Sequence record: MW749006.1
Direction: 5' to 3' (one strand)
DNA: 64,000 bases
The notes under the pieces were generated by a model. The model worked only from the letters and a program-made list of their open reading frames with translations. It searched no databases and was not told where the DNA came from. The first letter of the stretch is position 1, and the number at the start of each line of letters is the position of its first letter. Both the position numbers and the translations under genes were made by a program. This document shows positions 11,578 to 48,999 of this stretch, piece after piece.

Positions 11578-11594
11578 TACATATATAGTAAGTA
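11578..11594 (+). promoter_or_regulatory. Candidate phage RNAP promoter (ACATATATA motif)
   Basis: tACATATATAgtaag directly after a terminator and before a + strand gene; one of five intergenic copies. Confidence 0.5.
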
Positions 11595-42684: not shown

Positions 42685-42708
42685 TTACATATATAACACT
42701 TAGAGACT
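42685..42708 (+). promoter_or_regulatory. Candidate phage RNAP promoter
   Basis: TTACATATATAAcactTAGAGACT. Confidence 0.55.
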
Positions 42709-42752
42709 ATTCAGAATACATCTGATAGTCAATTACCAACTGAGGAAATATC

Positions 42753-45579: not shown

Positions 45580-45700
45580 ATAGAACTCCTTTAGTTCAGT
45601 TATAGAGTATACTCACCGCATAACCAAACTACCACCACCCTTAGTTAAATAAAACTAAAAGAGACATGGAATGGATGACCTACCGTGGATTAACTTAGAG

Positions 45701-45715
45701 TTACATATATAGAAT
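45701..45715 (+). promoter_or_regulatory. Candidate phage RNAP promoter
   Basis: TTACATATATAgaat upstream of the + strand accessory run. Confidence 0.5.
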
Positions 45716-45764: not shown

Positions 45765-46088
45765 ATGGCTACAAAGTTTGAGTTTTTAAAGATGTTAGCT
45801 CCTTTCAAAGACAATCAAGTAGTTATCTGTATGGATAGTTCTGGTAGTTGGGATAACATCATTGAAGTAGTTAAAGACGGTGGACAGATAGCCATACGGT
45901 TTGGTTCTAGTTCTAGACGTTTCTCTAAGTTAGACCTCATTAAAAGTTTAGAACCTTTCCACGAAGACTCTTGTGTTATCTGTAAACGAGAGAACGATGG
46001 TTGGGATAACGTAGAGGAACTAGGTGAGATTGACGGTATGACTGTTATTCATTTTGGAGGAGGTTCTCCTTTTAGTTCAGAAAGGTAA
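45765..46088 (+). CDS. Hypothetical protein made of two ~50-aa repeats
   Basis: KFEFLKMLAPF..NQVVIC..SGSWDNIIEV..GGQIAIRFG versus KLDLIKSLEPF..SCVIC..NDGWDNVEEL..DGMTVIHFG. Confidence 0.7.
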   Translation: MATKFEFLKMLAPFKDNQVVICMDSSGSWDNIIEVVKDGGQIAIRFGSSSRRFSKLDLIKSLEPFHEDSCVICKRENDGWDNVEELGEIDGMTVIHFGGGSPFSSER

Positions 46089-46093
46089 TTAGT

Positions 46094-46807
46094 ATGTCTA
46101 ATGTAATAGTAGGAAAGAAGTGGGATAAGGGAGCAATCTACATTGGTAGAGGATCTGTCTTAGGTAATCCTTTTGCTATGAAAGATATGTCCGATGAAAC
46201 TCGTGATGAAGTTTGCGATCAATACGAAGATTACTTCTACGAACAGATTGAGAACGATCCTAAGTTTCTAGCTACGGTAGAGAGTTTAATACTGAAAGCA
46301 GAAAAGGGTAAAGTTATACTAGGTTGTTACTGCGCACCTAAACGTTGTCACGGTGATACTATCAAAGATTACATTGATGGACACTTACAGGAAATACCTG
46401 TAAACATCTATATGGGAACGAATGAGAATCCTAACCTAAGTAATCTAGCTCCTAGAAAGTTTAAAGATAAAACTAGTAAGTTGGTTTTCTTTTCAGTTGA
46501 ACATGCTTACCAGTCTTTAAAGAGTGGTTCTTTAGACCAAGAGACTTATGACAAATATCAGGAAGGGAAGAGTTATAAGATCCCTGGTACTTTAGGAACA
46601 CTAACTAACAGTGGTTGGAACCTTAAGTTGATGGAAAGTCTTATCATGCAGTCCTTTGAACAGAACAAAGAAGCTAGAGAAGAATTACTAGCTACAGGTA
46701 CCAGAGAGTTAACGCATACTCAAGAGAAAGGTATATGGAAAAAAGAATTTCCACGTATTCTTATGGAAGTAAGAGATAAACTTAGTTTACGAAATATGAG
46801 TCTATAG
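46094..46807 (+). CDS. DUF4326 - NADAR-like fusion protein
   Basis: N-terminal YIGRGSVLGNPF...LGCYCAPKRCHGD (DUF4326); C-terminal FSVEHAYQSLK...FEQN...LLATG...ILMEVRD (NADAR/YbiA-like). Confidence 0.65.
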   Translation: MSNVIVGKKWDKGAIYIGRGSVLGNPFAMKDMSDETRDEVCDQYEDYFYEQIENDPKFLATVESLILKAEKGKVILGCYCAPKRCHGDTIKDYIDGHLQEIPVNIYMGTNENPNLSNLAPRKFKDKTSKLVFFSVEHAYQSLKSGSLDQETYDKYQEGKSYKIPGTLGTLTNSGWNLKLMESLIMQSFEQNKEAREELLATGTRELTHTQEKGIWKKEFPRILMEVRDKLSLRNMSL

Positions 46808-46868
46808 TTCAATAGTAGAACACCATGCTTTTAACTTGGAGATAGAGGTTCAAATCCTCTTAGACTTA
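46798..46868 (+). tRNA. trnK: tRNA-Lys(UUU), atypical
   Basis: GAGTCTA/TAGACTT acceptor, GTTC/GAAC D-stem, CCATG-CT TTT AA-CTTGG anticodon arm (U-U mismatch), AGAGG-TTCAAAT-CCTCT T-arm; no encoded CCA. Confidence 0.65.
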
Positions 46869-46888
46869 CCTTACACATACATTAATAA

Positions 46889-46964
46889 GCGCCCTTAACT
46901 CAGCGGATAGAGTACCTTCCTTCTAAGAAGGTGGTCGCAGGTTCGAATCCTGCAGGGCGCACCA
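46889..46964 (+). tRNA. trnR: tRNA-Arg(UCU)
   Basis: Canonical cloverleaf: GCGCCCT/AGGGCGC, ACTC/GAGT, CCTTC-CT TCT AA-GAAGG, GCAGG-TTCGAAT-CCTGC, ending ACCA. Confidence 0.95.
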
Positions 46965-46982
46965 TACATTATAGAGGTCTTT

Positions 46983-47594
46983 ATGACACAAGAAGAAGTT
47001 TACTTTGATATAGTAAAACGATACGAGCAAACTTCCGAAGAAGAGCTCTTAAAAGAATTAACACGAGTAGCTAACCATATTAAAGAATACAGAAACATGT
47101 TCTCTAAAGTAATAGCTAGTAAGTTATCTATGCACCTGCTAGCTACCTTGAGTCCGTTGTTAGATGACAGTCAACGAGATGATTTGGTTCGAGACCAGAC
47201 AGCGCTTAAATACTTACTCTACACTGAACTAGTAGTTAGAGTGGCTATGGGTGCAGAAGACTATGTTACTCTGTCTCCTGTAGGTAGAATGGTTTGTATT
47301 CTTATGTCACAAAGAACTACACGAGTTACAGATAGAAACACTAGACTAAGAAGGATGTTAGAGTTAGTTAATTTAAATTCATTCAGTGATTATATGGAAG
47401 AACAATACAATGAAAGCGTGCTTGAATTAAACTATGATGTACCAACGGAACATGTAGTCCTTAAGAAGATAACTAGTAATGGAAGTATTAAAGTAAATAG
47501 ATTGGACTTAGATCCTAACAAACTACTTGACTTCCACACAGTTAAAATGTTTAAAGACATAGAGACATTCCTTAAACTCGAGTCCTCCAGGTAG
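46983..47594 (+). CDS. Hypothetical helical protein
   Basis: 203 aa, SD GAGG. Confidence 0.7.
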   Translation: MTQEEVYFDIVKRYEQTSEEELLKELTRVANHIKEYRNMFSKVIASKLSMHLLATLSPLLDDSQRDDLVRDQTALKYLLYTELVVRVAMGAEDYVTLSPVGRMVCILMSQRTTRVTDRNTRLRRMLELVNLNSFSDYMEEQYNESVLELNYDVPTEHVVLKKITSNGSIKVNRLDLDPNKLLDFHTVKMFKDIETFLKLESSR

Positions 47595-47608
47595 AGTTTT
47601 AGGAGTTA

Positions 47609-47920
47609 GTTATAGTGGTTCGCTAAAGTTATTAAATACACTTAAACAATTTTTGACTTAGTTATTTAATAGCTTCCACTATAACGACCGTAGGGTATCC
47701 GGCTTCCTAAGAGTGATGTTGTTGCCTCCAAGTTACTCCTGTCGTTACTCTTAGGATAAGTCTAGCACTGCTAGAGAGTTAGTTATTGTTTAGTGCAGCT
47801 CATACCCAAGTGGGACTAGCCCAACCTTAATACCTCGACGTTCTCTTTACGAGGTGGGCCTAATTTCCTCCGGGTAGTGCTAGCAGCTTCGGCTGCTAGT
47901 GCTATTTCTTTTTCTTTTTT
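47609..47920 (+). ncRNA. Unassigned structured RNA / attenuator-like leader ending in a UUCG-loop terminator
   Basis: ORF-free interval with nested stems (47609-18/47676-85, 47627-38/47663-74, 47706-18/47743-55, 47696-702/47870-76, 47819-37/47850-59). It ends in a 13-bp terminator at 47875-47904 plus a U-tract. Confidence 0.55.
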
Positions 47921-47961
47921 CCTCTTTCAATCCAATGACACTATAACAGGAGTTCTCTAAT

Positions 47962-48999
47962 ATGAAAGTCCCAATTCTTGGTATATCACCAAACATAAAC
48001 ATAACTACCGATAAAGGGGTTGTGGAAGTTCGTAACTTAGCTTGTGCTATAGAAGTAGGAGTTAAAGTTAAACCTATTACACCGTACAAATTAAAGAACA
48101 GTTCTGGTGAGTGGGTTAACGTCGTAAGTGTAACTAACCTTGGAACACAATACGTAAGAGACTTTATTGTAGAAGACGGTAGATGTTTTGTAGTTGGTGA
48201 TAATCAACGAGTGTTAACTAATAAAGGATTGTTGTCTGGAGATAATATAAAGACGGATATCGAGATTACTTTACAAGCCGAAGGTGATATAGACTATCCT
48301 CCTGTGGAGTGGGTAGAAGGGTTTCCTTCGTTTCCTTTAGACACTAACTCACTAAGTACTTTAAAGTTATTAGGAATGATCACAGCCTTCGGTAGAGTGA
48401 TACCTGAGTTAGGTGTGATTGGTTTAGAAGATGTTCAGTCTAGAACTGTAGTGGACTTCACTAACTTAATGGAAACAGTTTTCCATTTAGCGCCAGAAGA
48501 CATGGTAAAAACAAAACAGACTACCAACAAAGTTTCAGTACACTACACTCATGTAGGTTTAGCTAGATGGTTAAATGGTCTACTGAATCGAGGTATTCCT
48601 TGTGAAGTAATGAGAGCATCAAAAGAACAAATTCTGATGTTTCTTAAAGGAATGTACGATCAAAGATACAGTCAAACTCAGACTCCTATTAAAGGAGCTA
48701 AGTATGTGTACTACGGTAATAAACCTGTGGTTGCTAGACAAGTGTTTAGTTTGTTGAAAGTTCTAGGTTATTCTCCAAGACTATTAAACGAACAAGATCA
48801 CAAGTACTCTGTTCTGACTACTGGTGTTAATATCCATGAAGATAGTAAGTTAAGATCTAATCTCTATAAAGATGTAACTACTAAAACAGTTAGAGTTAAA
48901 GAAGTTTGTGGGTATCTAGATGAAGTTTACCTTATAGAGATTGATCAAGGTAATAATTATATTGCCGATGGTTTAGTTATTAACACTGGAGTTATATAA
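47962..48999 (+). CDS. Free-standing degenerate intein-like protein (Hint plus LAGLIDADG-like domains, catalytic residues lost)
   Basis: Block A GISPNINITTDKG, block B VGDNQRVLT, LAGLIDADG-like LLGMITAFG and FLKGMYDQRY, blocks F/G EVYLIEIDQGNNYIADGLVINT. Own SD AGGAG; no exteins. Confidence 0.7.
   Translation: MKVPILGISPNINITTDKGVVEVRNLACAIEVGVKVKPITPYKLKNSSGEWVNVVSVTNLGTQYVRDFIVEDGRCFVVGDNQRVLTNKGLLSGDNIKTDIEITLQAEGDIDYPPVEWVEGFPSFPLDTNSLSTLKLLGMITAFGRVIPELGVIGLEDVQSRTVVDFTNLMETVFHLAPEDMVKTKQTTNKVSVHYTHVGLARWLNGLLNRGIPCEVMRASKEQILMFLKGMYDQRYSQTQTPIKGAKYVYYGNKPVVARQVFSLLKVLGYSPRLLNEQDHKYSVLTTGVNIHEDSKLRSNLYKDVTTKTVRVKEVCGYLDEVYLIEIDQGNNYIADGLVINTGVI

Follow-up and report, generated by a model that had tools for sequence, protein, structure and literature searches.

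A conserved structured RNA downstream of gene 49 in Bacillus jumbo phage AgentSmith

The gap between gene 49 and gene 50 of Bacillus phage vB_BspM_AgentSmith (367 nt, positions 47595-47961, + strand) very probably holds a functional, independently selected structured RNA. It represents a family not described before, within the known kind of phage-encoded structured RNAs of unexplained function. A first-pass annotation of the DNA had proposed a novel phage ncRNA here, and this proposal was borne out by the strong covariation of its helices, its conserved motifs, the absence of an Rfam match, and the extension of the family to a remote relative, in which the neighbouring protein retains only 34% identity. 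We regard a stable non-coding RNA that acts in trans or as an RNA-protein particle as a reasonably probable reading, and the alternatives are weighed below where the evidence bears on them.

The window analyzed here is the first 64 kb of the AgentSmith genome (MW749006.1, 200,233 bp), with identical numbering in window and record. AgentSmith is a phiKZ-like jumbo phage, a Gram-positive member of the group. This assignment is based on the product of gene 52, a distant homologue of phiKZ gp101, and on the several RNA polymerase beta-type subunits and the tubulin-like protein in the genome annotation. Gene 52 matched 170 other phage records, all <60% identical; most belong to phages with Gram-negative hosts, including many phiKZ-like ones. 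The nucleus-forming phiKZ-like group as a whole has hardly been explored for its RNA biology. New RNA biochemistry may be sought among structured phage ncRNAs that comparison supports strongly and that fall into no known family, and the availability of a cultured phage makes this RNA directly testable.

Fold, relatives, and covariation of the RNA

The gap contained no + strand ORF of at least 40 aa, and its GC content at 47700-47899 was 0.485, compared with about 0.30-0.41 in the flanking windows. The predicted + strand fold had a free energy of -107.1 kcal/mol (z = -4.5), and none of 100 shuffled sequences folded as well; the fold of the opposite strand had a z of -3.7. We placed the RNA on the + strand because its frequent G-U pairs and the T run fit this strand only. 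Together with the covariation described below, these results confirmed the earlier description of an ORF-free, locally GC-richer interval with multiple helices. The UUCG-loop terminator that had been placed at its end was likewise recovered, with a stem of 16 pairs including G-U pairs and a T run after it. The coordinates of the RNA, its parts, and its neighbours are listed in Table 1.

Table 1. Features of the RNA locus in AgentSmith.
Feature	Position	Strand	Description
Promoter-like motif GTTACATATATAG	45700..45712	+	Nearest intergenic copy upstream of the RNA, before gene 45
tRNA-Lys(UUU) and tRNA-Arg(UCU)	46797..46964	+	Rfam 70.7 and 69.5 bits; ARAGORN
Gene 49	46983..47594	+	Orphan 203-aa protein, directly upstream of the RNA
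Hairpin H1	47609..47685	+	10-bp base stem 47609-47618/47676-47685
Multi-helix core	47688..47871	+	P1-P5 and tail
P1	47693-98/47802-07	+	Encloses P2, P3, and P4 (four-way junction)
P2	47705-18/47743-56	+	Large conserved apical loop: GCCUCC 47724-29, AGUUACUCCUGU 47731-42
P3	47761-66/47770-75	+	Small local hairpin
P4	47776-79/47798-801	+	Variable hairpin
Linker GGGACUAG with P5 bulge AACCUUAA	47812-47830	+	Single-stranded
P5	47819-22/47856-59 and 47832-37/47850-55	+	Bulged hairpin, AACCUUAA bulge
3' tail AUUUCCUCC	47863-71	+	3' end of core
Intrinsic terminator	47872..47918	+	Stem 47872-87/47892-907, UUCG loop, T run (terminator scan)
Spacer with gene 50 ribosome-binding site	47919..47961	+	Moderately conserved (CAATCCAATGA)
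Gene 50	47962-48999		Weak Intein_splicing match

The RNA consists of a 5' hairpin, a multi-helix core, and the terminator, which is its likely 3' end. Hairpin H1 carries a conserved asymmetric internal loop, UUCGCU (47619-47624), below a variable top. The linker between P1 and P5 is an 11-nt single-stranded stretch that contains GGGACUA. The base of P5, in which 47819-22 pairs with 47856-59, replaces a small GGG/CCC hairpin of the RNAalifold structure. Independent double changes maintain this pairing in two relatives, with A-U for G-C in contig L013 and U-A for C-G in contig L022.

Eleven metagenomic contigs showed the same order of tRNA(s), gene 49, and RNA. Three of the relatives were short Logan/ENA contigs retrieved by a word search with the gene 50 protein (84, 69, and 54% protein identity), and six more such contigs came from a word search with the gene 49 protein (74-89% identity); the gene 49 homologues in contigs L004 and L005 were 90% and 69% identical. 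An exhaustive profile search with the gene 49 alignment added one remote homologue (E = 3.7e-28, 34% identity), bringing the count among 1.8 billion representatives to twelve close homologues and one remote one. The remote contig, L022, is 1.8 kb long and carries tRNA-Arg(UCU) followed by the gene 49 homologue and by the RNA, and it stops before the terminator. Some of the sampled words of 47400-48200 occurred in sixteen public runs from 14 studies of wastewater, manure, seawater, landfill, food, and freshwater, the part present being determined for four of these runs.

Searches by blastn and tblastn against 50,697 phage records returned AgentSmith alone for the RNA, gene 49, and gene 50. Exact-pattern scans with the invariant blocks found none in IMG/VR or the JGI metagenomes, and protein-guided scans of IMG/VR with gene 50 and with the gene 49 alignment were likewise empty. 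Two pattern matches in Nocardia genomes were attributable to chance, as the covariance model matched neither. This model also gave no match in the Bacillus jumbo phages AR9 and PBS1 and found a single copy in the 200-kb AgentSmith genome. As far as can be seen, the RNA family is confined to AgentSmith-like Bacillus jumbo phages.

Ten sequences were aligned from H1 to the terminator, and the structure evaluated was that of RNAalifold with one correction (the P5 base). Nineteen of the 66 pairs were changed on both sides, compared with 6.7±1.5 in shuffles (none of 500 reached this count) and 1-5 in controls with slid partners; 98.3% of cells held a standard pair. In an alignment of the core of 11 sequences, which was fitted to the model and hence leans towards it, 27 of 56 pairs were changed on both sides, compared with 7.2±1.8 in shuffles (0/500) and 4-7 in slid-partner controls, and 98.5% of cells were paired; the L022 changes, however, are evident from its sequence alone. 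P4 alone among the helices was without such pairs in the 11-sequence set. These counts come from only about five clearly distinct sequence types, and the remote L022 drives much of the covariation of P1 and P5. Among the 10 sequences, the base stem of H1 had all cells paired and four of its 10 pairs changed on both sides, and L022 maintained this stem through two more swapped pairs while keeping UUCGCU. The terminator also had 100% of cells paired, with five of its 16 pairs changed on both sides, all from L013. The first-pass annotation had suggested building a covariance model from homologous loci, and the helices of that model covary beyond shuffles; it scored 258.9 bits in AgentSmith and 56.9-63.5 bits in L022 (E about 1e-18). 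A column-covariation search for unseen tertiary pairs was too noisy and was driven by one divergent sequence.

The core was 80-90% identical to AgentSmith in the closer relatives, compared with 60-78% at the third codon positions of gene 49 and 65-80% for the DNA of gene 50 and gene 51. Differences in the RNA sat mostly in stems, where they were compensated, and in three loops; several unpaired motifs were unchanged even in L022. This pattern of substitution suggests that the RNA is under strong purifying selection. A small peptide encoded in the P2 loop was considered and rejected, since the 12-codon ORF was broken by 1-nt indels among close relatives and absent in L005.

Genomic neighbours and transcription context

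The RNA followed gene 49 in every contig fetched. tRNA genes preceded gene 49 in 10 of the 11 relative contigs, the remaining one (L005) beginning too near gene 49 to tell. The set of these tRNAs varied between close relatives (window positions 46797-46964, L003, L004, L008-L013, and L022 compared), comprising Lys and Arg; Met, Leu, and Arg; Met and Arg; or Arg alone. A tRNA-like gene with a 2-nt anticodon call in L009 is possibly a damaged tRNA-Arg. In two contigs (L004:720-1244 and L010:278-778), but not in AgentSmith, an inserted HNH_3 homing-endonuclease gene separates gene 49 from the tRNA array; mobile endonucleases seem to use this junction as a point of entry.

On the other side, genes 50-52 lie downstream of the RNA in the same orientation, with gene 50 immediately adjoining. 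The first-pass annotation had regarded the RNA as a possible partner of, or riboswitch or attenuator for, this dead-intein gene and had suggested checking whether the two co-occur. Contig L010 contradicted both roles. Its RNA, terminator, spacer, and ribosome-binding site were intact, and gene 50 was internally deleted (L010:1950-2060), leaving 12 codons from the N-terminus and 19 from the C-terminus that are out of frame with each other, with the gene 51 homologue directly after. Gene 50, the 'domesticated intein' gene, is thus dispensable in at least one lineage, and because that lineage lost gene 50 yet kept the RNA, the RNA is neither switch nor partner of gene 50. The constant neighbours of the RNA were gene 49 and tRNA genes, not gene 50, and the picture of the adjoining orphan-intein gene is corrected to one with no RNA partner at the locus.

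We next consider how the RNA is transcribed. The most repeated 11-mers of the genome form the motif (G)TTACATATATA(G/A)TA, which occurs on the + strand only, in intergenic positions before genes; CATATATAGTA has 13 exact copies across the 200-kb genome, for example at 11578, 71754, 92575, 139091, and 191199. Its repetition and placement suggest that this motif is probably the early promoter of AgentSmith. No intergenic copy was found between 45712 and the RNA, the sole match with one mismatch (46404) being inside gene 46. Neither a sigma-70-like site in the gap upstream of the terminator nor the early motif between gene 49 and the RNA was detected. The copy before gene 45 is the likely start of the unit that ends in the RNA, and one early unit from about 45.70 kb would comprise gene 45, gene 46, the tRNAs, gene 49, the RNA, and the terminator.

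Public reads yielded three low-depth contigs on the RNA in all, two of which came from RNA or possibly RNA libraries. One, from a wastewater metatranscriptome (X6), was an identical 152-nt contig over 47571-47722; the other, from a possible RNA library (X16), was a 172-nt contig of the L003 type over 47749-47911. Both runs left the flanking genes uncovered, and DNA carry-over is possible.

The product of gene 46 (46094-46807), annotated as toprim-like, matched DUF4326 (E = 1.5e-17) and, below the Pfam cut-off, NADAR; these matches hint at reversal of ADP-ribosylation, a possible counter-defence function encoded alongside the RNA in its early unit. Several promoter copies were followed by a shared leader of 25-30 nt, ACTTAGAGACTAT.CAGAATACATCTG or the variant ...CTATACTGAATATATCAG, a conserved 5'UTR element found at 42700-42730, 166900-166930, 91970-92000, 92590-92620, and 93735-93765. 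At about 101,895-101,925 of the genome (locus L014), the start of gene 100 is closely preceded by a run of C and then G (cccctcccccccccc gggg), which could be slippage-prone or structure-forming.

The absence of a promoter motif between gene 49 and the RNA, together with the strict adjacency of the two in all 12 sequences, including the remote one, would also fit a 3' untranslated cis element of the gene 49 mRNA, serving message stability or as a site of gene 49 autoregulation, with no role in trans. The conserved, sequence-specific internal loop of H1, which resembles a protein site, points in the same direction. We consider this reading rather unlikely, since 300 nt with five helices and invariant loops far exceed what stability needs, and the gene 49 protein offers little that would suggest RNA binding. 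It has no recognisable RNA-binding family or domain, and its arginine-rich stretch was lost in the remote homologue. It had no relative in Pfam, PHROG, or PDB, including profile searches, and its AlphaFold model was confident for residues 120-203 only, with no Foldseek match at E<=0.001 and no VIA match at Z>=5. A language-model lead from a protein atlas weakly suggests a winged-helix-like, DNA-binding fold for the N-terminal half. A particle of the RNA and the gene 49 protein is possible but unsupported.

The terminator and known RNA classes

The first-pass annotation had described a terminator and a mutually exclusive antiterminator, the latter formed by 47762-47772 and 47873-47883. These segments are indeed complementary over 11 bp in AgentSmith, partly because both terminator arms contain AGUGCUAG, a consequence of two central G-U pairs in the stem. 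The pairing itself was not conserved. None of its pairs was changed on both sides, L010 lost one pair and L013 six of 11, and 98 of 500 shuffles reached the same paired-cell share and covariation score. What was kept instead was the local hairpin P3 (47761-47775), formed by the same segment: it was maintained through three different compensatory pair changes, its fifth pair being G-C, A-U, U-A, or C-G in different phages. The terminator of L013 (L013:1023-1056) has Watson-Crick pairs in place of both central G-U pairs and five further pairs exchanged, a classic example of compensation in a terminator stem. Because the alternative pairing was unmaintained where its sides vary, and P3 was conserved, there is no comparative support for a terminator/antiterminator switch.

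This result weighs on the reading of the RNA as a cis-acting attenuator or riboswitch, in which the core would be a sensor controlling whether transcription continues beyond the terminator, to gene 50/51 and to the virion genes. The position directly upstream of the co-oriented genes 50-52 would suit such a role, as would the invariant junction nucleotides set among variable stems, which are aptamer-like, and the ability of P3 to pair with the 5' arm of the terminator in eight of 10 sequences. However, this alternative pairing showed no compensatory change and was broken in L010 and L013, L022 altered both a stem pair and the loop of P3, and the competing hairpin was the structure that selection retained through three different pair types. 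Moreover, the RNA ends in a very strong terminator, the gene that comes first after it is dispensable, and with no sigma-70-like or early promoter motif just upstream the RNA would probably not be a 5' leader. No riboswitch or T-box model of Rfam matched. We therefore judge an attenuator or riboswitch to be distinctly improbable. The spacer motif CAATCCAATGA after the terminator was not repeated elsewhere in the AgentSmith genome and is not a repeated promoter-like word.

By analogy with HK022 put and Bacillus EAR, a structured element that immediately precedes a strong terminator and a long operon in the same orientation might also let polymerase read through the terminator into the virion-gene block. 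Such a processive antitermination RNA is very unlikely here, as the RNA showed no similarity to put or EAR in Rfam and is much larger than either.

Comparison with known families was performed with Rfam 15 (4227 models), using the gathering score for the whole window and E<=10 for 47400-48100. This Rfam scan, a check also suggested by the first-pass annotation, matched no known family: the two upstream tRNAs were the only matches in the window at the gathering score, and the permissive search of 47400-48100 gave three chance-level matches of 10-16 bits, compared with thresholds of 57-75. ARAGORN identified tRNA-Lys and tRNA-Arg only in 46000-48500, with no tmRNA or further tRNA, and the T-box model RF00230 gave no match at E<=10. 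The by-eye statement that the RNA resembles neither tmRNA, group I core, nor T-box thus agrees with Rfam and ARAGORN. A group I intron was rejected, since no model matched, gene 49 ends at a stop codon, and gene 50 is equipped with a separate start and ribosome-binding site. An omega RNA was rejected as well: the HEARO model had no match here, compared with 41.6 bits (E = 1e-6) for the true copy in the genome, which belongs to an IsrB element with a HEARO-type RNA. The RNA had no detectable likeness to this omega RNA of AgentSmith, and its neighbours are not IscB/IsrB. An rRNA mimic was also discarded. The family profile found nothing at E<=100 on the + strand of the E. coli rrnH operon and Nocardia 16S; a both-strand search gave a single rRNA row, with E = 17 and on the opposite strand, and local alignment at best scored lower than the shuffle mean. 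No SSU or LSU model matched, and a by-eye likeness to 16S helix 45 was not significant.

A relic or component of a mobile element, whether a group I intron from a lost ribonucleotide reductase gene or an omega/guide RNA, could be imagined from the intein-derived gene 50 (weak Intein_splicing match), the IsrB element with its HEARO-type RNA, and the HNH endonuclease genes nearby in L004 and L010, but it is largely refuted and scarcely credible, given the lack of any group I or HEARO match at E<=10 and of likeness to the omega RNA of the genome, the absence of a split host gene, the retention of the RNA where gene 50 was deleted, and the strong purifying selection, which speaks against a relic.

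Several known RNAs share individual properties with the one described here. GOLLD and ROOL typically adjoin tRNA genes. Like the AgentSmith RNA, they are phage-encoded and elaborately folded, with an unexplained biochemical role; the AgentSmith RNA likewise follows a tRNA array, but a protein gene intervenes, its length is 300 nt compared with 580-800 nt, it matches neither model, and it has been found in one phage clade only. The 5'UTR-derived sRNAs of phiKZ and 201phi2-1 (201phi2-1 sRNA005 and the phiKZ sRNA upstream of gp182), whose function is unexplained (PMC11512511), are also short, terminator-ended, intergenic, conserved in related giant phages, and located near virion genes (PMC11512511). 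Those sRNAs originate close behind a promoter and precede the gp182 tail-protein family (PMC11512511). The AgentSmith RNA is not preceded by a promoter motif, follows gene 49 in the vicinity of the phiKZ gp101 homologue, and is larger and more complex. HEARO/omega RNAs are also multi-helix RNAs of 200-300 nt beside a protein gene; in contrast to them, the RNA has no variable guide segment at either end. The phi29 pRNA is likewise a structured Bacillus phage RNA near morphogenesis genes, but Rfam gave no pRNA match, the phage type and packaging machinery differ, and the AgentSmith RNA lies in an early-type unit.

Proposed function of the RNA

We return to the favoured reading of a stable non-coding RNA that acts in trans or as an RNA-protein particle. 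In this model, the RNA would be made as the last element of the early transcription unit, and the terminator would define and protect its 3' end; the product would measure about 220-300 nt. The RNA would then act through its invariant single-stranded motifs, probably the C/U-rich loops. These conserved unpaired motifs most likely contact another molecule, because they have no conserved partner within the RNA, and the preservation of unpaired loops while the neighbouring protein falls to 34% identity indicates a specific molecular partner.

Three of the motifs are C/U-rich (CCUCC, CUCCU, and CCUCC), predicted to be unpaired and without a partner inside the RNA, and complementary to purine tracts of the Shine-Dalgarno type. 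Pairing with the ribosome-binding sites of mRNAs is therefore the specific mechanism that we prefer, tentatively and as one possibility suggested by the complementarity. Over 12 nt, the P2 loop perfectly complements the gene 133 ribosome-binding region. Candidate ribosome-binding sites were defined as GGAG located 5-11 nt ahead of the start codon of an ORF with at least 60 codons, and seven of the 127 matched the loop at 10 or more of 12 positions. These matches are suggestive at best, because any loop containing CUCC complements many such sites, and no long complementarity to the RNA stood out within the phage genome. The C/U-rich motifs were not all universal: L005 lacked the second, L012 and L013 had CUAC for the third, and L022 kept two of the three along with the tail motif. 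Regulatory sRNAs of the RsaE/RoxS and RNAIII type resemble the AgentSmith RNA in their repeated unpaired C/U-rich motifs, their terminator-defined ends, and their complementarity to GGAG-type sites; the AgentSmith RNA differs in being far more structured, with no similarity in sequence or model, and its pairing is predicted.

A more far-reaching and rather doubtful proposal is that the RNA is an early trans effector of a nucleus-forming jumbo phage. Its three 16S-like CCUCC/CUCCU loops might titrate Shine-Dalgarno sequences and so reprogram translation, which would mean host shut-off or timing of phage messages. Alternatively, the RNA might serve as a decoy against a host defence nuclease, an option raised by the NADAR-domain gene and the replacement tRNAs that share its early unit.
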